Shown here: positions 3,071 through 56,047 of the stretch, in pieces
Numbering within the stretch: the stretch's first letter is position 1
How the letters are laid out: the number at the start of each line of letters is the position of its first letter
NCBI RefSeq assembly: GCF_001194135.2
Contig: NC_068991.1
Location: 340,427 to 396,706, forward strand
Direction of reading: 5' to 3'
DNA: 56,280 bases
Source of the DNA: Octopus bimaculoides
Lineage: Eukaryota
Translations under genes and position numbers: made by a program
The notes under the pieces: generated by a model
Told to the model about the DNA's origin: nothing
Database searches by the model: none
Seen by the model: the letters and a program-made list of their open reading frames with translations, nothing else

Positions 3071-3619
3071 CTTCACAGATCAATTTCAAGATTTTGTATT
3101 ATTTGTTAAGAGATGTGTTTCAGGTAAAAACAACAATAATTCTATTCATTGCCATTCAATAAAATGTAATAAAACTATTATTTTCCAACTGGCACCAACA
3201 GCTTTGTTGACACTGATTATTACTGGACATTTAAAACAGGGACGGGCAGTGGCCACCACCACTGAATGATTTCCCAGGAGCTAATAATGTGCTTGATCAG
3301 GTTATCCCTATTTCAGTTTAGAATTAAAAAATATTAAAGACCAGCACCAAATATCAATTTCTCTTTTCTCTAGATTTTTAAATGTTGGTTGGCAGCAGAG
3401 AAATATCTACAAATGTGGAAAAAAAAAAAATGCTTTTTTCCCCCTCTCCGGAATTTTGTCTTTCTGGTCTTTTCTCTCTGCCCGTGTTTTACCTGTTGTC
3501 ATCAAACAGTAACCATTCAAAAGTAACATTGTGTCAATCCTTCTGCTGTCTGAGTGACTGTAACGGTCTTTCCTTCAAACTATAACAACAGGAAAAATAA
3601 CAAATAAATAAATAAGTAC

Positions 3620-3867
3620 CTTTTCTAAAGGATAACCAGAGAAAGTGCCAGAGTTCTCATGCCAAATTCTGATTTTGTAGAGAGTTCCAATGTCTGCTGT
3701 GGCTATTTCAAATTTGTAAGTTTGCCCTCCTTTGAAACCTGTCTTTCTGTTGGACAAAAGTATTTCATTTGACTTTCCTTTCAAACCATATACAACAACT
3801 GAAATAGTAGAGTCAGGCCTTGCTCTTGTGGTCTCACTGGTTGACACCCACAAAAACCAACGTTGTT
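3620..3867 (-). pseudogene. PLAT exon with open frame (N-terminal about 80% of a PLAT domain)
   Basis: TTATTTCAG|AA acceptor and AAG|GTACTT donor; 248 nt, phase 1 to phase 0. Reads QRWFLWVSTSETTRARPDSTISVVVYGLKGKSNEILLSNRKTGFKGGQTYKFEIATADIGTLYKIRIWHENSGTFSGYPLEK. The usual GW.L is GYPL. Confidence 0.9.
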
Positions 3868-4029
3868 CTGAAATAAAGTTTAGAAATTTACCAAGTTCTT
3901 ATCAAAATACATGTAAGATTGTATATTTTAGAGTTTTATACATAAGCCCCACACATACAAATATGGAAAAGTGAATGTTATGAGGGCAAGTCAGAAATTA
4001 TATGCACTCTGTAATTTATTAAAAAATAA

Positions 4030-4858: not shown

Positions 4859-4972
4859 CNNNNNNNNNNNNNNNNNNNNNNNNNNNNNNNNNNNNNNNNN
4901 NNNNNNNNNNNNNNNNNNNNNNNNNNNNNNNNNNNNNNNNNNNNNNNNNNNNNNNNNNNNNNNGATGATGAT

Positions 4973-9811: not shown

Positions 9812-12479
9812 CTAAAATGGTGTCATGTACGTCTTTTGTGACAAAATAAAACCCTAAGCATATGTGACCAATGGTAGACTTGATCTATCTTAACCAGAAT
9901 CAGTTTTTTGTTATAGAAAAATCCTTTCAGCTGAGAAAGTTTACATTTATGGAATTAGCTGACCATTATTTATTTTGAGAAAGTGGACAAAAGTGGACAT
10001 AGAGCAATGTCCAGTGTCTAATTCTCCTGATAATGTGCATGCATATATATGCACATACACACAAGGACACAAATGAAAACACACATCCACACATAACAGA
10101 CACACAAACCCATATACATAGAGACAATCAAACATGCACACACAAACACATGCATATATGTGTATACACATGCACACACATGTGCACAAGCAAACAAGCA
10201 AAAAGAATGCAGCTTCAGTACTGGATAGAGTCAACAACTATTGAAGAGGTTGCAAGAAGCAACGAAAATTTTAGAAAAAATAAGTAAATGGGTGGAAATA
10301 GCCAATAAAGCACCTTCCCTACTAACTCTAAGAAAGCAACCTGCCTAGGAAATTGGTTATTTAACCTTGTTGTGGAAAGGAATCATGGGTTTTCTATCTG
10401 TGACCACAAAAAGAGATTAATTTAACTAGTTTCAGTATTTATTACAGCCTCATCAGAAATTGTAAACTTATTTTCTGCCCATAGTATGAATATTATTTGT
10501 AATTGAGAGAAACTCACACAGAACTAAGTTGCCCTGCAAAATGTCTTTAAAAATTAATTGAAATACTGCACTAGGGTTTAAAAATTTTTTTTTTTTAAAC
10601 AAAATTTGAAACTTTTAGAATGCGAGACCAGTGTGTGACCACATTGAGGATTTCACAAAAACTCAGGCTCACAAGACTTAACTTACACTTTAAATTATTT
10701 GACAGAAATCAGTAGTTTGATGTATTAGGAATTCATTGATCAAAGATGCTCCAACTATGACCCTCATGTCTTTTACTCAGACACACAGTGTATCTAGAAG
10801 CTCATTATCTTTGCTTCGTTGCTGTTGTTTAACCTCAAGTCAGTCCAATTCCAGTAGGCCCATGACCAAAGTTGCTCCAACTGTGGCCATCCAATCTGTT
10901 ATTCAGATACAATGTATCTATAACCAGATCATCTAATGTGTCCTTCGTTTTGTAAGATGACAAGGTGTGATTTGATGGAAATTTGACTGCTATTCCCAGC
11001 AAGCTGTATAAAGTATATCTGGTATATATTTCATTGTTATTTACCTCCAATCAGTCATCATTCAGCAGAACTATGATATTCCAACCATGACCATCTTGCA
11101 GAGATTTCGTTATCAACTCACTAGAACATTGAATATTCAGAACTCAGTAAGAATTTCACATCTAAACTATTGGTGAGATGAGATTCTGTTGTGTCTAATT
11201 CCAGTTTTGTCATTGATTGTACAAAAAAATTCACTTTCTATATTAATATCTCATTCCTCACCCTCTTCCTCAATCTGTCTCTCTCTGTCTCTCCTTTCTC
11301 ATCTACATATAAAATCAGGCCCCTATTATGCCAAAAGAATGATTGAACAATCAGTGGTAGATACTTAAATAAAGATTAATTAAAAATTAAGTGATTATAA
11401 GAATAGAGATGGCATGTTCAATGCGAACTTGACACACAAAGACATCAACATATGGAAAGAAAATTGCTTCCATCTTTATTAGTCTAAAAATACTCCCCAT
11501 GAAGGTGGTCTACTGGCTAGAATAACTTGGCATAGGAAGTGAGTGAAGTTTCTTAAATTAATGACTTTGAAAAAGAGAAAAAAACCTGGCTTGAGAAGAG
11601 GAGGGAAAACAATTCGTGTAAAGGTTCTATTTTCTTCCCCAGTCTTGAGTCAACATTTACAAGCAGTGTCTAGCTAGTTGCTGTTGTTATTATTACTATT
11701 ATTATTATTATTATTATTACTATGAAAATTACTATTCAAAACAGAACACTGCCTCAAATAAGCACACAATACGACCGAGCTGAGTCTGCAAAGATTTCCT
11801 CCTTGAAGTATGTACAGCTTGTTATCAACACATGAAATCATAACAGTCATTTATTCGATGTTTGTTTTGTATTTCTCATGGAAGTATGACATAAAATATA
11901 TAAACACTTCTCTAATCAACTAGATTGGTAGGGCATCAGTGATGGCTTCAGTCTCATAGGGGTCTATAGAAAGGGTTACGGCTCTGATTTAATTCATTAA
12001 ATGTCCTGTCTCCCAAACTCAATTGTTTTTTTTTTTTGGCTCCTTAGTGTGTCTTGTCTTTCAGACAACACTGAACATGTCTGACAATTCTTTCACTCCA
12101 CAATACTTACCTCTGGAATTCATTCCTTGGCCATAGTTTTCCTCCTTACATTTGTGAAAAAAATGGCCAAACTAATCATTAACCACATCAAAGTTACCAG
12201 TGTGGGTGCAGTCTTGAGGCTTACCTGCTCCTGTCAACTCATGCCAGCATGGAAAACCAGCCATTAAATGATGATGATGATAGTGCAATTTAAAACTTAA
12301 ATTGCATGACAAATAACCAATATTTAAAACTTCATGTGTATTCCCTTTTGTGTTGTTACGAAAACGTACATAGGATGGTGTAACTAAATATCTTATACAC
12401 AATTTCTCACGTTTTATTTTATTTTGTGTGTGTGCGTGTGTGTGTGTGTGTGTGTATACAATTCTATACAGAAGCATAT

Positions 12480-17879: not shown

Positions 17880-18060
17880 ACCTCCTCAATGATTGACAGT
17901 GTCTTCATTATTGTTGTTGGCAACCTCAGATGAACACGTTTGCCAACACAATGATGGCCTTCATGGTTCAAAAAATGAGCAAAGTAGAACGCTCCACCCA
18001 TGATGCAACTGACTTAATTACTTGTGAGACACACTTTCAGAAACCTCACCATCTAGCAAT
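17880..18060 (-). pseudogene. Possible PLAT remnant abutting the mariner fragment
   Basis: VERSTLLIF*TMKAIIVLANV loosely matches FER...DIFT.EA..L..; weak. Confidence 0.25.
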
Positions 18061-18089
18061 CTGGTGGACACCTGTCAGATTTCATCCAC

Positions 18090-19039
18090 ACCAGAAACTA
18101 CAGCTTAGAAGATGACCCTCATTCAGGAAGATCTGTAGAGCTCGATGAGGACATCCTGCGAACCCTGGTGGAACAAAATCTCATTGTAACTGTTGAGGAA
18201 TTAGCAAAGAAGCTTGGATTTGGTCATTCAACCATTCATCGACACCTGCATGCCATTGGAAAAGTCAGCAAATTGGGTCAATGGGTTCCTCACAAACCTT
18301 CTGAGTCTAATCATGTGCAAAGAGTGAATGTGTGCTCTTCTTTGCTGTCACATCTCATGAATGAACCTTTTTTTTTGTGCCAAATAGTGACTGGTAATGA
18401 GAAATGGGTTCTCTCTAAAAATGTCAAGTGCTGAAGTCAGTGGGTAGGGAAAAGAGAAACACTGGCACCCCAGGCTAAAGAAGGTCTTCACCCATGTAAG
18501 GGGTTGTTATCTGTTTGGTGGGATACGAAAGGTTTAGTCTACTTTCAACTTTTAAAGCCAAATCAAACAATAACAAAAGGAAAAGATACTGCGAGCAGCT
18601 TGAGTGGCTTAAATCAGTGCTAGGAGAAAAACGACCATCTTTGGTTTCAAGATGAAAGGTGTTCTTCCATCAGGATAATGCTCAGCCACATACAGTGAGG
18701 ATGACACTTCCAAGGCTGGAGCAGTTTGAATGGGAAACGATGCCCCACCCATCATATTCGCCAGACATTACCCCATCTGATTACCATTTATTCCGCAGTC
18801 TTCAAAATCATTTGGACGGAAAAAATATGAATTCTGTAGACGAGGTCAGAACAGTAGTGGAGGAGTATTTTTCGTCATGAATTTTGGAAGAGGGGCCTTG
18901 CAAGTCTACCAAACGGATGGAAGAACATTGTAGAAAACGAAGGTGGGTATATTTTAGATTAAAAAAAGAATTTTGCTTATCTTTTTTTGAAAAATAAAAG
19001 AAGTATAAAAAAACTGCATTATTTATGGGATGACCCAAT
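18090..19039 (+). mobile_element. 5'-truncated mariner (DD34D) transposase pseudogene with 3' TIR
   Basis: SLEDDPHSGR, WVPHK, IVTGNEKW, FHQDNAQPH, HPSYSPDITPSDYHLFRSL; terminal ATTATTTATGGGATGACCCAAT. Confidence 0.93.
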
Positions 19040-22479: not shown

Positions 22480-22678
22480 CTGTAAAAGGAACAGTAGAGA
22501 AGCGAACACACACAATAGCCTGAAGATGTGGCAGAGATAATAGCCTGGAAACATTGTAAAAGATCAATTTGGGAATATTGTTGTTCCTAATGAACTACAA
22601 TAGATACAAAAAGAAATAAATAAAAAAAGATTAAATTAGAACATAGTTGTATTTTTAATGACATATCTAAAAGAAAAG

Positions 22679-22729
<51 letters not shown>

Positions 22730-22739
22730 CATCAGTTGT

Positions 22740-23250
22740 GGTGTGCAAGAGAGACAATTGCATTGGTATGGTCATTTGGTGAGAATGGATGAGGATAGCT
22801 ATGTGAAAGAGTGCCACAGCCTAGCAGTTGAGGGCACCTATGGAAGAGGTAGACCCAGGAAGACCTGGGATGAGGTGGTGAAGCACAACCTTCGAACATT
22901 GGGCCTCACCAAGGCAATGACTGGTGACCGAGACCTTTGGAAATATGCTGTGCATGGGAAGACCCAGCAAGCCAAGTGAGACCATAACCCGTGGCCTTTA
23001 CTAGGGGTGTAGCCAACCTACTTATACATACCTTCCCTTCTTTGGACACAAAACCCTGCTTGCGAAGACCTGTTGAGGCAACTGAAATCAAAATCGAAAT
23101 TGAACCAAATTCGATGATTGGCACCTGTGCCAGTGGAGCGCTAACAGCACCATCTGAGTGGGATCACCACTAGAGCAGCGGTCTCGCTTCCGTGCCAGTG
23201 GCATGTAAAAAGCACCATTTGAGCGCAATCATTTCCAGCATCGCCTTACT
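22740..23250 (+). mobile_element. RTE LINE 3' end plus 3' UTR
   Basis: QERQLHWYGHLVRMDEDSYVKEC...VEG..GRGRPRKTWDEVVK.NL..LGL...DRDLWKYAV*, followed by the same UTR motifs as 4640-4858. Confidence 0.88.
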
Positions 23251-31213: not shown

Positions 31214-31380
31214 NNNNNNNNNNNNNNNNNNNNNNNNNNNNNNNNNNNNNNNNNNNNNNNNNNNNNNNNNNNNNNNNNNNNNNTATATATGCATAGATAT
31301 ATGTGCATGCATACATGTAATACATATACAGATGATAATGATGGTGATGACGACGATGATGACAGACACACATATGTATG

Positions 31381-34922: not shown

Positions 34923-35739
34923 CTAAAAAGGGTGAACAGAAAGGACGAGGACAAAGAGGGAGAAAGCTATAGTTGATTGTACCAGAGCTACTGTATTCTC
35001 TGCATTTAGGAAGATGTAGCTTTTATCGTAGACCTATTAAACCATCTTAGTTCAGTGCTCTAACTTTGTAGTTTCAACTCATCCTAAATGGAATTATAAT
35101 TAAAGATTTGTATCTGAAATTCAGCTTGGAATGCAAGACATACATATACACACACTGAACGACAATACCAGCACACACAGAGATAGATAGACAGACAAAT
35201 ATACACAGAAACATATACATGTATCTCTCATCCTCTCTCTCTCTCTCTCTCCACACACACACACAGATATATATGTTGTGCACATGTGAGTGTCTGTATA
35301 TTTTCAATAAGAGCAACAAAAATATATACTTATACGTAACATGTTAAATGTGTAAAAATGTATGACCATCAACAAAGGAAAAACAGATTTAAGATTTTAT
35401 TTCATGGCAGAGGTGTGTGTGTGTGTGGGGGGGAGAGTGATATTGTAGGAAGATGTTGAAATTGTTGTCATCCTGACAAAAGAACAATGTCATACAGGAT
35501 GTTCAGGCTAAATTGGATGATTTTTTTAATGTCTTTTTTTGAGGATCAGCTTGATATATTGGTGAACAGTTAATGGACGTGGAGAGTATAAAGATTAAAG
35601 TTGTAGTAGTGAAAAAGTTAGCTGACAAGGAGGATTGGAAGCCCTGTGAATATTGGAAAAGAGTTTACTTGTATCATGGGGATTCATGATGGGTATCAAA
35701 ATACCAAGATTATGGCTGCTGTTCAATGCTCTGTGGACA

Positions 35740-37659: not shown

Positions 37660-38134
37660 NNNNNNNNNNNNNNNNNNNNNNNNNNNNNNNNNNNNNNNNN
37701 NNNNNNNNNNNNNNNNNNNNNNNNNNNNNNNNNNNNNNNNNATATATACGCACTTCGCATCATTTTAAATGTCAATAATTCGTATTTTATTTTTTTTATT
37801 TTGAGATTTTAGAATAAAGAAAAGATTAAGAATTCAGATAATTTTTTCATGTTTGTTTCATTGAGTTTAAAAACCCATACAAATATATTTGTTTAAACAG
37901 CCACACTGCTACAGTACACCATTACCAGTTCTTATTTTGAGTTACTGCTTTCTTGGAATGGGTTGAGTACAATATCTTGCTCATTCTAGTTTTGGCACAT
38001 GGTGATATGAGCCGAGATGATCTTCCCAAGATCAGCCACTTCACGGAGTGCATTGGCACCGACAGGAAAGAGTCTTCCCATTTTCTACAGTGTCTATGTT
38101 CATTAAAGGTAATGTGATTGAGAATGTGAACAGC

Positions 38135-43815: not shown

Positions 43816-46530
43816 TACAGATAGCAGACTTGTCTTTCCTATCTCATAAAGATATTAATGAACGTAAAAACAATTACACCCCTCCCTACCACCACCACCC
43901 ATACATATACACTTCTCATTCACAAATATTCATAAGGAACAGTTTGCAGTATTCTCTCTCTCTCTCTGAATTTCATTTATAATGTTCATTGGTGTTTAAT
44001 TTATTTAAAGTACAATATTACTTTTAACTTTGGTATGACAACAGAAATTTTGAAGGAAAGAGTTTGATTCTTAACCCCCAATATATAATTGGTAAGTGTC
44101 CTAACAACTCTACTGCCTAACAATGGTTAAAATATAACAAATAATATTTGACTACTAAATTATTAAGAATTTGCCAAGACAATTCATACAGTAAATCTCA
44201 GCCAAAACAGATTTTTACCTTTATTTTAGAGTTTGTCTACTCATATTTCAATACATGGATTTTGTATTTGTTTTGAAAGTTGAGAGAGAGAGAGAAAGTG
44301 TAAAGCAAGTTATAAGTGCAGACACTTTCGTAAGACGATGGCAGGGGTTAAAAGAAAGAACATGACTAAGTCAATCTTTGGTCATGCTTGTCTGCATTGA
44401 AGGCTAAGTCTAGTGTTTGTACAACAGGTTTAAAAGAATTTGCAAACATGTCAAAGTATCGTTTCCAACCATCCAGTTATTGCTTTAAATATACCACAAT
44501 CAATTTAACAGTTTCATGACCTCCATTCAAAGGCACGAAGTGTCACAGAAAAATGCGCACAAACTTCCAGGCTGATGCCTAGAGTTTGTTGTTCTCTTAA
44601 ATTCTCTGCTATTAGAGTTCCTATTTTAAAATCTGCTCATCAAAATCCTAAAGAATAATGGCCATAATGGGTATGTCAGTAAAGCCTAATTGAAACGGCA
44701 CATCTCAGAATGGAACCTAGATTAAAGGAGCAGCTGATATTTAACTTAGTTGCTCTTAACTTTGTGTGATAGGGAGGAAAAAAATAAACGTAATTAAGTG
44801 AACCAACAACCAGACTCCATCGCCACCACCGCCGCCGCCACCGCCACCGCCACCACCACCACCACCACAACCACCATTGTATTGTTTTGCTTGTTTTTCC
44901 CAGGAAAACTGAAAGGTTTTGCTTCCAAACTCTCTCGTTTTTGCTTTGTTCTCTTATTTTGTCTTCTTTTAAGCTTGAGAATACAAATCTTCTGCTTGCT
45001 TTGTTCCACCTTCTTTCTTTCTGAAAGATGTTTTATGAATAAAATATTTTGTAAGTTCCTGGAGAAAAATGGCAAGTTTAAGGACATAAAACTGCAATGT
45101 ACTTATGCCAAGGCCGAGTGAAAATGGTAAAGCAATATACTGCTTTGCTGATGAGGTTAGAATGGGAGAAGCACAAGACAAACCCACAAAAATCTTTCCT
45201 AAATGAATTCCGTATTTAAAACAGCAACATTTTTTTATGATTTCAATAGATTGGCAAATAAATTCCATAACTGAATTAAATTCATTGAATCATTAAGTAA
45301 ACCTATCACCTATTTCTAGTTGCTAGACTCAATTTGATGGCTTCTATAAATTTAGTTAATTTTCATATGACTTGTATACTTGTACAGAGGTACAGAGGTA
45401 TGATTGTAAAAAGGTACCATAAGGTGAGAGCATAAAGATACAGCACAGGGTTTGAGTGTATAAATACAGAAGATGAAAGTGTGAATATATAAAAGTAGAA
45501 AATGGGGTTAGTCAAGCAGCTGTGAAATTAAAAACAGCCATAATTGATGGTCCACCAAATAATGTAAAGCAAGATATCTATTTTAGCAAAATATGGTCAA
45601 ATATGACAGTCACAGAACCAGCAGCGAAACAGATGTTAAGGTGAGCTGACAGAATCATTAGCATATTGGACAAAATATTTATGTTCTGAGTTCAAATTCT
45701 GTTGAGGTTAACTTTATAAAGGATGAAAAGTAAAGTATCAGGGAAGCATTGAAATTGATTTTAACCATAAAATTCCTGGTCTTGTGCAAAAATTTGAAAG
45801 AATTCTAAGCCAAATACACTACCTCCAGAATTATCATAGATTTAGATAACAATCAGATTAGCATTTGTAAATAAGAGGGAAAAATAGAAAAAGATTCAGA
45901 GATTTTTTTTTTAATTTAGAAATAAACAAGAATGATCTGGAATAAGTTTCATTTGAGAAACTATCAACTTGAGAAGATGTTGGATATTCTTTCGAAACAA
46001 AGTTTGATCACTAAGCTATGGCATGATTGAGATTTACAATTGATTAGTGATAAACTGGCTACAAGTCTTGAACTCTAGACCCCCNNNNNNNNNNCAAGAC
46101 AGTAGCAATCCAACATGTTAATCCACCTAGATAATATTATCATGATGTTATAGATTAACTTAACAAAATCAATCAAGCATTATAACAACAGTCAAATTTC
46201 TGATTGACTGACTTTATATCAGTCAATCATTTGATCAGTTTAACTGCCGCTACCACCACCACCACCAGTTCATTAGAGAAAATATAACAGAAAAGTCTAA
46301 TTCTTCAATTACATGTAACATGGGCAACGCCAGGTATCTCTGGTAGTATATATACATATATATATATATATATGTATATGTATATATGTGTATATATATA
46401 TATACATATATGTATATATATATGTGTATANNNNNNNNNNNNNNNNNNNNNNNNNNNNNNNNNNNNNNNNNNNNNNNNNNNNNNNNNNNNNNNNNNNNNN
46501 NNNNNNNNNNNNNNNNNNNNNNNNNNNNNN

Positions 46531-47200: not shown

Positions 47201-47917
47201 AGACAATTGGCAATTTGCTACACTTGAAGAAATCTGACCAGCTAAGTAAAACCGAGACCATAAAAGTGTGTCCTTTATGCTTGCATCCACACTCCCCCCC
47301 CCNNNNNNNNNNNNNNNNNNNNNCCCCGCCCCCACTTCTGTACACAATATGATCCCTGACAAATCTCTCCTACATCCCAACTTGCTCCGCTTCCCCCTAC
47401 TGTATTCTTCTCCCCTCTATCTGCCTCTCTCCCTCATGAAACCACCTGTATACAATATCCCTGTCAAATCTCTTCCCCACAACATCTCCTTCCAATACAC
47501 CCTCCTCCTACCCATCCCCACTCACTACATTCTCAACCCCTCCATCATCCACTCTCCTTTCACAATCTCATGAACTTTACCACCTACCCACCCACCTACT
47601 TATCCTCCTCAATCTCCAGTCCACTTCACTATATATAATGCCCTTGTGTGTACACCATGTCACATCTTCACCTGATCTATCTCTCTCTCCCTCACCTGTT
47701 GTAGATATGAGTTTCATTTACTGCAAAACACCTATTTCTGTCCCTCAGTTAAGGAGCCTTGTCACTTGGTGACCTCACTAGTGTTGGTGCCACCTAAAAA
47801 ACACCAAATATCCTCTATAAAGTGGTTGGTGTAATGAAGGGTATTTGGTGTTTTTAGTTAGTGTAATGAAGGGCACCCAGCTATAGAAAGTATACCATAT
47901 GTACAGTAGAGCTTTTG

Positions 47918-51160: not shown

Positions 51161-51827
51161 TGCTTCACTCATTACAACAGTGGAGAAAAAAAAAAGAGAG
51201 AAAAACAGATTCTAAAGGAGAAAAAATGTTTATTTAACAGAAGCAAAATATGTTATTAAAAAAAATTGGAAAAAAAGGAAAAAGTTAATTTCATTCTGGG
51301 AGAAACTAAGGAAAAAGATTTTTGTGTGTGAATATTTGGTGTTTTATAGAAACTATTCTGTGGATATATAACATGGTTTAATGAAAGAACCAAACAGTTG
51401 GACATGTAAGATTCTTCATCTGTTTATTCTCAATGTTTTTTCTATTGTTTTAAAGTCAGCTCATACAAATTAATAATTATTAATTATTCGTTGGTGAATT
51501 TTTTGAAAACATTTCTGCAAATTCTTTTCACAAAATCTCATTGCTTTCATTGACTGACTTTAAATAAAGCAAAACAAAAACGAAACCCCAAAAAATAGGC
51601 ACCTCCTTCCTTCCCCAACCTCATAAATAATAATTATTCTCTGTAACGAAGATGTCTATTTCTGCAGGAGACCATACTGATCTAACAGGTGCTAGTCACA
51701 CCTAACAGAGTCAGTAACCTTCAGAAGAGAATCAAGAAAAAAGAAAACAAACGACTGAGAACGGGAAACAAAAACTGGTAACACTTTGTGAAATCTAAGA
51801 TTTAATAATATTTGCTCATCATCCATC

Positions 51828-53625
51828 ATGCATTTGTCAATGTTATTGAGTTTACTATTCTTGCTATCAAATGGGATTGTATCTGTTATGGTGGCAGCAG
51901 CTTCAGAAGAATGTGTAATCAGTATGGTGATTCCAAGGAACAAAATTAAGAGTTCTTGTAGCGATGTTGAAAGCTTGTCAAAAGTAGTAAATAAAAACAG
52001 AGAGGACATGTATGGGTTCGATAAAGAAATGAAGTCATTGAAATTCATGTTAGTGACTGAGATGCAAGGCAGCACGGAAAAAAGGATGAGCCTAAATGCT
52101 CGAATAATTCGTCTTGAAAAGATTATTAACCAGCTGATTGGAAATCCTGATAGCAGTAGGACCGGAGAAGAGCATGGTCACCGTAAAACAGATACAACTT
52201 CTCATCCCTATTACTATGGGAGATCATCAATAAACAATCACCAAGTGAAAGATGAAGCTTTAGCGGATGTGCCACAGTTAGAAACTATGGTTGAGAAATA
52301 CACTTTAAATGCGTTTCGCAAAGTCAACAACACCATATCTCAAGAGGTTGATAAACGCTTTAAAGCATATGAAAATAATTTCAATGAAGACCTGCAGAGA
52401 AGTTTAGATGACACCATCCCTAGAGAAGAAATTGTCCAAAAACTTGATGATGGAGTCAGAGCTGAACAACCAATGTCAAGTGCTCGTATCATGTCGACAG
52501 TCCTTTCTGCAGAACTGAAAGAGTTGAGGAAAAATATTCGAGATCTGACAAGGAAATATCAGGAAATCCATAAATATTATTATTCTCTTGAAGAAAGAAT
52601 GAGGATTGAAAGTAACAGCATTCAAGGACAACTTAATGCAACGAAGGGAGTAACCCTCCAAGTGAAGAGAAAAGTTCAAACAATTGAAAGAACTGCAAAC
52701 AAAACCATAGCTGACGTAAAGATGTTGAATAAAAAAATCCCAAACCTCGAAGACTGGCGTTATGAGATCAATAACTCTGTACACAGGGCGAACATTTCAG
52801 CAATCAAGAACATTCATAGAATGTCGAATCAAATTAATTCAAGTTTGTATGAATACATAGATGAGATTATGGGTCCTTTGGATTCCAAGATCCAAGAAAT
52901 TGTAATCGGTTCTCAGAAGCTTGAGGAACTCATTTACGACTTGAAACATGATCTTAATGATACACAAGAAAAACATGCTGGATCTCTGGACCAGGTACAG
53001 TCCAAGATCAGGCAGATTGATGACGGAATGAAATTGCATTTCCTGAATATTTCACAAATTCTATTCACAGCAATCAGTGCTCTCAAAGGCACAGACAACC
53101 AAACCATGGAGAAATTACAGAAATACAACGAAAGCATTAATATCATGAAAGGCAATCTGCTGGGTAAAATACAACATGTAAACTTCACAATGCAACTCTT
53201 AAAGAGTCATACAAAGAACCAAAGTGAAGAGATGCAGAAACAGGCCAATGTTATAAGACATTTGAATGAAATTCTCAATTCAACGTCTTTGAGAATGAAT
53301 GCCATGAAGAAAGAACTGCTACAGTTTCGGACTGAGGTGCTTGTTAATTCTGGGAAATGGGCACCCTATAATTTCTCATTCCATAATATCACAAGTGATT
53401 GTTATGGCACACGCTACATAAAGAAAATTCCTTACCACGTCGGACGGTATGTTGGTGTGATACTTTGTGGTCAGCCTGAAAGATATAAAATTCTTCTCAG
53501 TAACAGAATGTTTTCAGGGTATTTGGATATAGCAGACAATTTGGGATCAGGAGATGACCACTGTGAATTCGTAGGATCCAGTAGAAGAACATTTAATTGC
53601 AAAGGCTCAATCAAAACAAATGAAG
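51828..53625 (+). CDS. Large coding exon of a secreted coiled-coil glycoprotein with an ABI3BP(TARSH)/FNDC1-like C-terminal domain; 3' exon(s) not in window
   Basis: Uninterrupted frame of 599 codons plus 1 nt. In-frame TGA upstream at 51789; ATG has A at -3. Hydrophobic N-terminus MHLSMLLSLLFLLSNGIVSVMVAAASEE. Middle is heptad-rich and helical. The end, W..F....SDCYG.RYIK..Y..GRYVGVILC...RYKILLS......DI.D..G.GDDHCEFV....EG, matches the ABI3BP/FNDC1 C-terminal motif as I recall it (C.G.QYVK..Y..FVGV.LCN..RYKIYLS......NIGD..GHGEDHCQFV). Donor GAAG|GTTTGT at 53625/53626 (phase 1) is followed by T-rich intron-like sequence. Candidate acceptor TTTCTGCAG|GAG at 51667/51668. Confidence 0.9.
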
Positions 53626-53753
53626 GTTTGTACATTCTTTTCTTTTTCTACTTTAATTTGATGTTAAAACTGAAGAAAAAAAAAAAAGAAAGAATAATCT
53701 AGAATTTCTACATTATCACCTGCCCCCAACCCACACACACACACACACCTTAC

Positions 53754-53987: not shown

Positions 53988-54542
53988 CTTAAAGAGGAGA
54001 ATTAAAATAACTTTTACTTTTAACTCACTCATATTGACAACACTGACATAATAATGGGGCTACTACATGGTCACTTGATCTACTGGAAATAGAAACCAAA
54101 TCACTTCTTACTGTCCTTAAAAAGGAAGTATACCTTAGATAATGTAATCCTAAATGCATTATATCTCAACAAATGACATGATGGTCATAGCTATGACCAC
54201 AGTTGGGCTGGATTAGGTCTGACCAAGGGTTACACAACGACAATTCACTCAAACATGGATTTCTAATCTATTTAGTGAGTGTGGTGGCGGGAGGAGGTTA
54301 TACTTGTTTATAGGTTGACCCTAGTATATGACTGGTTGTATTATATTTTATCTGAATACAGCCAGAAGAAAAGTAAAACTGGAACTTAGAAATTAAAGAA
54401 ATATCATTGACATTGACAAATACCCATGCATAGGGAGATAGAGATGGGGGGGGGGAGGTGAGCAGGTGTTGATGAGCCATGTTCATGTGGGTGGGCATGA
54501 ATGGATNNNNNNNNNNNNNNNNNNNNNNNNNNNNNNNNNNNN

Positions 54543-54779: not shown

Positions 54780-56047
54780 CAGGGTGTCCCAGAAAGATTC
54801 ACCCATTGATAATTCTTAATTATTCAAAATAAACTTAAGGTAAGATAATGACATTTGGCACACACGTTCCTAATGTAAATTGTCGATCCATTGCATTGAT
54901 TACATTTCAAAATAATCACTTTTTGCCTTGATCATAGCCTGCAAGCGAGAGGTCACTGAGTTGCATGAGCACCATGCCACCTCTTTATCCAACTGGACCC
55001 ATGAAGACAGAAGGGCTTTCTTCAGGTCTGACACATTTGAAGAGGAATGAGCAGAAACCTTACTCTCTAAGATGGACCAGATAAGCAAAGTCCATGGGAT
55101 TGATGTCTGGACTTGAGGGAGGCCATACTGTCTTGTCCCCAAAACCACTGAAATGCTGTGTGTCAAATTGGACACATGGGCTGCAGCCCAATCTTGAATG
55201 AAGATGTAATGGTCACCAAAGGTTTCTGTGACCCAGGGTAACTCTTTGTTATCTGACATTTCCACATTTGACCTTGACACCAGCATCGATGAAGAGTAAG
55301 AGAGACTTGGACCCATCAGATGCAACTGTGGCCCAATCCGCAAGTGAAGCTGGCTTCTGATGGCATAAATGACTCCTGCTACCTTCGGGCAAGTCTCCTG
55401 CATTATGTGCATCCTGCCTGTTGGAGGTAACTGCCTCCATGGTGAAGATCTTCTCGTCAGACCAGATCAACACTTTGTTAGTGGTGTTCATTCATCTCAG
55501 CTAACATGCTTTTACCCCAGTTGAGCTGTTTCTTCTTGGAAGCTGCTAAAATTAACTGCTGGGATTGTTTCTTGTATGCAGTTAGCTTTAAATCCTCTTT
55601 AGAAATCCTATGCATTGACAATTCTAAAATATCAAGAGCTTTTGCAGTTTTTCTTGCACTCCTGCAGGGATCACAGTTCATTCACTTCTTCACAGCTTCA
55701 ACAGCTTGTTTGGTACAAGTTGATTGTTCCTACCAGGAATTGGCTTGCTAGAGGTAGTAGCAGACTCCATATATCATTTCCAGGTATTGAACACTGTTTT
55801 ACAGCACACATTCAACTGTTTTGTTGTGTCCTTGTTGCTCACTCCAGCTACTTTCAAAGCAACAATCTGGTCATGTTTTGCTTTAGATGCCATGTTTGTT
55901 TACAAACCTGTTATAGACGAATGAAACAATAGACACACGGACTAAAGACATGTGCGAATCTTTATGTAAAATGTAGATAATATTACATGAACCAATATTC
56001 TTTAGGAAGAGTTTTAAACATGGGTAAATTTTTCAAGGGACACCCTG
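54780..56047 (-). mobile_element. Full-length but decayed Tc1/mariner element, maT (DD37D)-like
   Basis: Imperfect TIRs of about 28 bp: CAGGGTGTCCCAGAAAGATTCACCCAT versus reverse complement CAGGGTGTCCCTTGAAAAATTTACCCAT, with TA on both flanks. Transposase pieces from the ATG at 55893: HTH region, IWSDEKIF, FIQDWAAAH, WPPSSPDINPMDF; frameshifted. Confidence 0.92.

Follow-up and report, generated by a model that had tools for sequence, protein, structure and literature searches.

A gene of Octopus bimaculoides for a predicted secreted heptad-stalk protein with a C-terminal TARSH_C domain, and its relatives across molluscs

The closest described relatives of the protein discussed here are ABI3BP (TARSH) and FNDC1, which share the C-terminal domain TARSH_C (Pfam PF21731). 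Vertebrate-type members are 900-2300 residues long, contain several fibronectin type III (fn3) domains and consist to 14-25% of proline and threonine. ABI3BP is an extracellular matrix protein whose general functions are largely unknown (PMC6426741). For FNDC1/AGS8, the C-terminal 372 residues, TARSH_C included, are described as a fragment that binds Gβγ, in an intracellular role (PMC12914184). In a stretch of 56,280 nucleotides of Octopus bimaculoides (NC_068991.1, 340,427-396,706, forward strand), to which we refer as the window, an earlier note made from the letters alone had proposed a secreted coiled-coil protein with a TARSH_C head and no fn3 domains at 51828-53625. Our analysis of this gene shows that its product shares with ABI3BP and FNDC1 a homologous TARSH_C domain at the C-terminus, with the same four cysteines, the tryptophan and the motifs RYKI, G-x-G-E-D-H-C-E-F and WYECG-x-x-IP. 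It differs from them in having no fn3 domain, a proline and threonine content of 7% (in the orthologue), and a heptad stalk with a C-x14-C motif instead.

The architecture is, with near certainty, a signal peptide, the C-x14-C motif, a segmented heptad stalk of about 480 residues and a C-terminal TARSH_C domain that is split by an intron (Table 1). The frame that encodes it, 51828..53702 on the plus strand, is the longest open reading frame (ORF) of the 56 kb with 624 residues; every other ORF has at most 224, and the larger of these are mostly translated low-complexity repeats. Codons 1-599 (51828-53624) and the G at 53625 constitute exon 1, which ends AAG/GTTTGT. This exon is transcribed: reads of RNA run X22, of which about 6% was sampled, cover 51862-53632 at approximately 5-20x (both orientations counted), and the depth is zero from the bin starting at 53633. 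Past the donor, the genomic frame continues with GLYILFFFYF, whereas orthologous proteins have AFGRSKWGEEPKRQKVGFLNPTCSWYECGITIP (A-F-G-R-S...) instead; the unspliced predictions P0002 and P0004 likewise read through at the donor position. Because ORF, donor, drop in RNA depth and continuation in orthologues agree, 51828-53625 is a coding exon, and the end proposed in the earlier note coincides with the exon end to the base.

The gene has two coding exons and a product of about 632 residues. Its second exon (33 residues) lies past the end of the window, beyond 56280; a tblastn search of the window with the C-terminal 33 residues of the Octopus vulgaris protein gave chance matches only. In Argonauta hians (L001), the exons are at 10001-11803 and 35184-35282, separated by an intron of about 23.4 kb, and in a more distant cephalopod a transcript contig of 3 kb (L002) encodes a whole spliced relative of 648 residues. 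Full-length identities of orthologues to the window exon are 93, 85, 77, 49 and 48%, the first being that of O. vulgaris and the last that of a cephalopod further removed; P0001 (O. vulgaris) and P0003 are orthologues of the window gene. The intron cuts TARSH_C at about profile position 77-95 of 127. Since unspliced predictions from other species (P0002, P0004, P0024, P0029, P0030, P0036 and others) lose the domain near one point, at positions 81-103 of the profile hidden Markov model (HMM), and go on with short odd tails, the position of the intron seems to be conserved across the family.

Some further observations concern the transcribed region and its surroundings. The run of N at 54507-54542 falls within the intron 3' of exon 1. 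At 52274 (+), X22 reads have G against a genomic A, in 4 of 4 and 1 of 3 reads in the two orientations; the change, at the third base of codon 149 (CCA>CCG, proline), is synonymous and may reflect either a polymorphism or A-to-I editing, a process common in cephalopods. Just 5' of the gene, at 51400-51643, many short contigs of run X13 (31-58 nt) pile up to a depth of about 8 to more than 150, suggesting a repeated element in the promoter or 5' untranslated region, and RNA signal 5' of the ATG is uninterpretable because of this pile-up. Runs X1, X2 and X13 contain about 95% of the sampled exon words (51700-53700), yet none of their contigs was placed on the exon.

That residues around 505-599 form the cysteine-patterned C-terminal domain of ABI3BP and FNDC1 had been recognized from the sequence alone. 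A comparison with Pfam bears out the identity, with a match of residues 511-588 (window 53358-53591) to TARSH_C at 93.3 bits (E=2.4e-26; gathering threshold 27 bits). The domain is incomplete in the exon, where only profile positions 1-77 of 127 are matched, and complete in the full-length O. vulgaris orthologue P0001 (positions 1-127, 123.3 bits). Its last 33 residues, with two further cysteines as judged from orthologues, are encoded by the downstream exon, in addition to cysteines 525, 547, 579 and 591 in exon 1. In an alignment of 42 diverse TARSH_C domains, W9, C23, C45, C77 and C125 are invariant, as are Y-K, D, D and R; the first three of these cysteines are encoded in the window and the fourth, read from orthologues, in exon 2. 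Beyond score and cysteine framework, the tryptophan, a cysteine and the motifs VGVxLC, RYKI, GxGEDHCEF and WYECGxxIP place the head in this domain family, and in the orthologues P0001, P0003 and P0005 the domain ends exactly at the C-terminus (...WYECGxxIP). Octopods have two additional cysteines in the head, C591 (NCK; window 53598-53600) and one at about 622 (PTC-x-WYEC; numbering of P0001). Both occur in O. vulgaris and Argonauta, C591 also in the window sequence, and they are jointly missing in the 48%-identical cephalopods and the other lineages aligned, a pattern that would fit a lineage-specific third disulfide.

An AlphaFold2 (AF2) model of the domain from the O. vulgaris orthologue, based on the 42-sequence alignment, has a mean predicted local distance difference test score (pLDDT) of 93.5 and a predicted TM-score (pTM) of 0.88. 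It is mostly β, with a single short helix across DDHCEFV. Foldseek searches of the PDB with this model had a best E-value of 0.9 and TM-scores of at most 0.36, the matches to SOD1, SRCR and PCNA being noise, and a profile search of PDB sequences with TARSH_C returned no match. As both searches came back empty, TARSH_C has neither a solved structure nor a recognizable relative among solved folds.

No fn3 domain was found in the window protein, even among Pfam matches at E<=10, nor in any of 28 representatives of the family described below. An in-frame stop, read from the sequence, lies 12 codons ahead of the ATG; most relatives begin with the signal peptide followed directly by the C-x14-C motif; and searches with 155 TARSH_C proteins, FN3-bearing ones included, detected no second TARSH_C-related or fn3-related coding sequence in the window. 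The absence of fn3 asserted in the earlier note is therefore confirmed, and the octopus protein, which also has no Pro/Thr-rich region, is not of the ABI3BP/FNDC1 type. Matches of the vertebrate type, such as P0094 and P0101, do carry fn3.

The N-terminal 25 residues are hydrophobic in the hydropathy profile, with A-A-A preceding S26, and the exon protein has no second transmembrane-like segment in this profile; both agree with the signal peptide postulated before, and the N-terminus is likewise hydrophobic in most full-length members of the family. Across 28 members from four classes of molluscs, the C-x14-C motif that follows always contains P36, and C29, K41 and C44 are conserved in 90% of them or more. 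C29 and C44 would be suited to staple chains together by inter-chain disulfides. The protein contains 15 N-x-S/T sequons, compared to 6.2 +/- 2.2 in shuffled sequences (none of 2000 shuffles reaches 15), and 11 of the 15 are common to all six cephalopod sequences. The main stalk (216-504) holds 12 of them, and 12 of the 13 stalk sequons are at non-core heptad positions. Judged by these sequence features, the protein is probably secreted and N-glycosylated.

In the stalk, our heptad score, a crude 28-residue measure, is positive for 65.5% of residues 27-504, compared to 11.4% in 200 shuffles (maximum 29.5%, with none reaching the observed value). The positive segments are 37-106, 216-304 and 351-504, and a trace of the register shows long unbroken stretches with I, L, M or V in position a and mostly L in position d, the last 58 stalk residues (from 447) forming one register that continues into the head. 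A call between dimer and trimer from this composition was attempted and dropped, the a and d positions being insufficiently discriminating. An AF2 model of the full-length single chain, made from a six-sequence alignment and used for secondary structure alone, places helices at 47-104, 148-196, 221-378, 384-418, 424-463 and 468-507, with β-strands thereafter. The second of these has a heptad signal below that of the other segments. Of the roughly 450 residues of helical heptad sequence claimed at the outset, the length is about right; in the AF2 model, however, it is interrupted by two linkers that are not helical (about 105-147 and 197-220). Both have residues that are invariant in cephalopods, namely Y129, Y130, H138 and Q139 in linker 1 and G209, R211, A212, E213, Q214 and P215 in linker 2. 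Residues of about 400-505 are near-invariant among cephalopods, and those of about 400-600 are so between octopods and the 48%-identical cephalopods; this near-invariance suggests a single functional unit made up of the head and the distal part of the stalk.

When 1.84 billion representative proteins were searched exhaustively with a profile, 285 matched at E<=0.001, and these fall into three groups. Word-indexed searches were less productive, with two candidates for the domain alone as query and the known cephalopod proteins plus coiled-coil noise for the family alignment. The stalk-type group, to which the octopus protein belongs, comprises proteins of 545-843 residues with a hydrophobic N-terminus, a single C-terminal TARSH_C domain and 6-11% proline and threonine. 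Most of them have the C-x14-C motif at residues of about 27-57 (26 of 28 representatives), and in about 35 relatives the heptad coverage is 0.36-0.68, compared to 0.01-0.20 in shuffles. In all 28 representatives TARSH_C is the only Pfam domain at E<=0.001, save isolated weak coiled-coil noise. We took a heptad-rich stalk of 450-650 residues as the criterion for the family, and the window protein has such a stalk, the signal peptide and the C-x14-C motif with the invariant proline, has no further Pfam domain and is collinear with the other members. Alignments extend in a single stretch from the N-terminus into the domain for Patella P0014 (10-634) and for P0042 and P0065.

All members with a named source are molluscs and represent four classes (many others come from Logan or ENA assemblies): cephalopods (Octopus vulgaris, P0001; Argonauta, LOC115217293), gastropods (Lymnaea; Biomphalaria, LOC106054374; Patella, LOC126824439; Haliotis), bivalves (Mactra; Sinanodonta; Pecten, XP_033751257) and a chiton (Liolophura, LOC135468094). 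These relatives resemble the octopus protein in the signal peptide, the CVLSLVVPRDKIKSSC-type motif, the heptad stalk and a TARSH_C domain ending in ...WYECG-x-x-IP. They differ from it in the length of the stalk, in stalk sequence, with an identity of about 17-22% outside cephalopods, and with regard to the extra pair of head cysteines found in octopods. Their names in the databases are automatic ('uncharacterized', 'Target of Nesh-SH3/FNDC1 C-terminal domain-containing', 'cytospin-A-like'), and the literature searched contained no relevant mention of PF21731, of TARSH_C as a domain, of a mollusc 'Target of Nesh-SH3' or of the ids of seven members. The search for TARSH_C proteins free of FN3 that had been recommended in the earlier note thus uncovered a family, and the impression recorded there, that this layout had not been described, is consistent with what we found. 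The architecture is not a characterised family, and its members are already present in public databases as uncharacterised predictions. It is an undescribed, mollusc-wide variant of a known domain family, with a layout that is not unique to octopus.

In other invertebrate architectures, TARSH_C occurs in tandem, with six copies in the nemertean Lineus longissimus (P0007) and two copies plus Sushi in the oyster Crassostrea virginica (P0016), and together with Trypsin in three ambulacrarians, P0078, P0091 and P0056 (crinoid, sea urchin and Saccoglossus). P0087 is a mosaic of CUB, Sushi, MAM, LDLa and Trypsin with TARSH_C, and P0099 combines TARSH_C with CUB, EGF, Ig and fn3. The third group consists of long Pro/Thr-rich proteins of the ABI3BP/FNDC1 type, with fn3 and a TARSH_C domain that stops three residues short of the C-terminus. 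Judged by these sequences, TARSH_C is a mobile extracellular module in invertebrates, in proteins that seem not to have been described in any study. In a neighbour-joining tree computed from 106 TARSH_C domains, the stalk-type proteins did not come out as a clade; given the shortness of the domain, we drew no conclusion from this.

Taken together, we consider the octopus protein to be a secreted oligomeric coiled-coil rod whose TARSH_C heads bind extracellular ligands multivalently, an explanation to which, as a whole, we give a probability of about 0.6. According to this model, the chain would enter the endoplasmic reticulum, lose its signal peptide and receive N-glycans at those stalk positions that face outward. 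It would then associate with at least one further chain in a parallel coiled coil, with C29 and C44 as a staple near the N-terminus, and the resulting rod would present clustered, disulfide-bonded TARSH_C heads at its far end. With its heads clustered, the rod would bind multivalently to a ligand outside the cell, which may be a component of the matrix or a molecule on a cell surface. We favour secretion because of the signal peptide, the excess of sequons, the conserved cysteines, the location of ABI3BP in the matrix and the domains with which TARSH_C is combined elsewhere (Trypsin, Sushi, CUB, MAM, LDLa, EGF, Ig and fn3), all of which are extracellular modules. Oligomerisation and a role in matrix or recognition are likewise predictions from sequence.

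Several points weigh against this explanation. The heptad register of the stalk is broken at no fewer than 13 points, and there are the two linkers in addition; because of these, portions of the stalk could fold back on themselves instead of forming one long rod. The full-length model, which is that of a single chain, has a low confidence (pLDDT 43), in line with what an obligate oligomer modelled from six aligned sequences would give. The heptad score is not calibrated as a predictor; the signal peptide and its cleavage site were called by eye; and the splice donor rests on the drop in coverage and on orthologues, with no junction read, exon 2 being outside the window. Further, the sole molecular interaction reported for a fragment containing TARSH_C, that of FNDC1/AGS8 with Gβγ, is intracellular (PMC12914184), a role that does not easily go together with the secretory features of the octopus protein.

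The same Gβγ interaction could be taken, along with the automatic names of the Haliotis and Pecten members ('cytospin-A-like', 'leucine-rich repeat-containing protein DDB_G0290503'), to indicate an intracellular cytoskeletal coiled-coil protein. These names mirror the bias in composition typical of coiled coils, and with a signal peptide, a conserved excess of sequons, conserved cysteine pairs and extracellular partner domains on the other side, we regard this as extremely improbable. If the protein does enter the secretory pathway, its hydrophobic segment might remain uncleaved as a signal anchor, making it a type II membrane protein with a coiled-coil stalk and an outward TARSH_C head, similar in topology to class A scavenger receptors, langerin and CD23, which are type II stalked receptors. 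The hydrophobic region of the octopus protein is indeed long (about 22 residues), but only two residues precede its core, leaving no cytoplasmic tail, and a good AxA site follows it. Moreover, in the 48%-identical relatives the h-region is of a typical, short length (12-14 residues) and, in nearly all members, the conserved cysteine motif starts 4-10 residues past the hydrophobic segment, so that membrane anchoring is very unlikely.

The breaks and register shifts between helices raise the question whether the stalk might instead be a monomeric or antiparallel amphipathic bundle, comparable to apolipoproteins or spectrin, the protein then being a secreted, single-headed carrier or scaffold. 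Single members do have weak matches to Apolipoprotein, DUF1664 and Fib_alpha in Pfam, but all of these are below the cut-offs. A periodicity of 3.5 rather than 3.6, cores of I/L/V/M and L in positions a and d, the unbroken register of 58 residues into the head and a conserved N-terminal cysteine pair that fits stapling of chains all argue for a coiled coil, and we find the bundle quite unlikely. A rival that retains the oligomeric architecture concerns its purpose: the protein might be a soluble humoral recognition molecule, an opsonin in the manner of ficolins or collectins, with heads that bind non-self or damaged-self surfaces. Ficolins and collectins have the same layout of stalk plus head, and the TARSH_C proteins of deuterostome invertebrates include fusions with trypsin-like proteases, as well as with CUB/Sushi/MAM/LDLa mosaics of the sort found typically in complement-like systems. 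Families of immune recognition proteins, however, usually expand and diversify, whereas the 56-kb window contains no second copy, the matches include only one octopod cluster, and conservation is very high, both to O. vulgaris (93%) and in the near-invariant region of about 400-600 shared with the 48%-identical cephalopods. A humoral role thus seems rather unlikely, although it is the most plausible of these alternatives, and we retain the secreted rod with multivalent TARSH_C heads as our preferred explanation.

Table 1. Features of the window, with residue numbers of the octopus protein and positions counted from the first base of the window.
Feature	Residues	Window position	Strand	Basis or remark
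Coding exon 1	1-599	51828..53625	+	ORF, RNA coverage, orthologues; 599 codons and base 1 of codon 600
Predicted signal peptide, MHLSMLLSLLFLLSNGIVSVMVAAA before SEE	1-25	51828..51902	+	Hydropathy, A-x-A before S26
C-x14-C motif, CVISMVIPRNKIKSSC	29-44	51912..51959	+	Conservation in 28 family members
Heptad segment 1	37-106	51936..52145	+	Heptad score; AF2 helix 47-104
Non-helical linker 1, Gly/Pro/His/Tyr-rich	107-147	52146..52268	+	AF2 DSSP coil
Helical segment 2	148-196	52269..52415	+	AF2 helix 148-196
Linker 2, cephalopod-invariant G..RAEQP	197-215	52416..52472	+	AF2 coil 197-220
Main heptad stalk	216-504	52473..53339	+	Heptad segments, register map, AF2 helices 221-507
TARSH_C, N-terminal three quarters	505-599	53340..53625	+	Pfam PF21731, E=2.4e-26
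Splice donor GTTTGT, phase-1 intron within TARSH_C		53626..53631	+	Sequence, RNA depth, orthologue proteins
Runs of N		4860-4963, 31214-31283, 37660-37741, 46085-46094, 46431-46530, 47303-47323, 54507-54542		Mostly beside microsatellites

The window as a whole is AT-rich (GC 0.32-0.40), with microsatellites and seven assembly gaps. An open frame on the minus strand at 3578-3898 contains a PLAT/LH2 domain (Pfam PF01477, E=7e-11) and is probably an exon of a neighbouring minus-strand gene, about 48 kb upstream of the TARSH_C gene. Three other open frames, at 54903-55466 (-), 18057-18431 (+) and 22671-22976 (+), resemble decayed transposon genes when inspected by eye, with transposase-like C-terminal and helix-turn-helix (HTH) parts and a retrotransposon-like tail; Pfam gave weak HTH matches for 18057-18431 (+) and none for the other two.

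The mollusc family shows TARSH_C in its simplest setting, at the tip of a rod with no FN3 or Pro/Thr-rich region. Owing to this simple setting, the conservation in four classes and the confidently predicted fold, the search for ligands, the determination of a structure and tests of oligomerisation should be more tractable here than with the large vertebrate proteins. The family would enlarge the inventory of extracellular proteins in molluscs by one that has not yet been studied, and it is a well-defined lead that overturns nothing. A more far-reaching view, which we regard as possible but doubtful, is that it constitutes a distinct, undescribed class of oligomeric extracellular proteins, at least as old as the last common ancestor of molluscs, with a disulfide-bonded head whose fold has no solved relative and a ligand class of its own, and from which the FN3-type ABI3BP/FNDC1 proteins would be derived. 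If this were true, it would represent a fifth stalk-and-head family, beside the FReD, OLF, gC1q and C-type-lectin proteins.

The age of such a class would depend on a protein of the amphioxus Branchiostoma floridae (LOC118414147, P0037), which resembles the mollusc family in its hydrophobic N-terminus, its richness in heptads (53% compared to 4% in shuffles), its C-terminal TARSH_C domain and the absence of other Pfam domains. It differs from the family in that it has no C-x14-C motif, and a profile-profile comparison with hhalign aligns only TARSH_C. The shared layout may be convergent and we do not claim common ancestry of the stalks; if the amphioxus protein were a true relative, the origin would possibly lie in the bilaterian ancestor.

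A broader comparison is with the angiopoietin/fibrinogen-related/ficolin, olfactomedin and EMILIN/multimerin proteins, whose layout the earlier note had likened to that of the octopus protein. The domains that define their heads and termini, FReD/Fibrinogen_C, OLF, EMI and gC1q, are absent from the Pfam results both for the window protein (E<=10) and for the 28 members, and the match to Fib_alpha is sub-threshold (16.1 bits compared to a cut-off of 29.9, E=0.014). With these defining domains absent, the likeness is one of layout alone and does not extend to common ancestry. What the octopus protein is predicted to have in common with these families is a functional layout, that of a secreted protein in which N-terminal cysteines and a region of coiled-coil oligomerisation precede a globular, C-terminal binding head.

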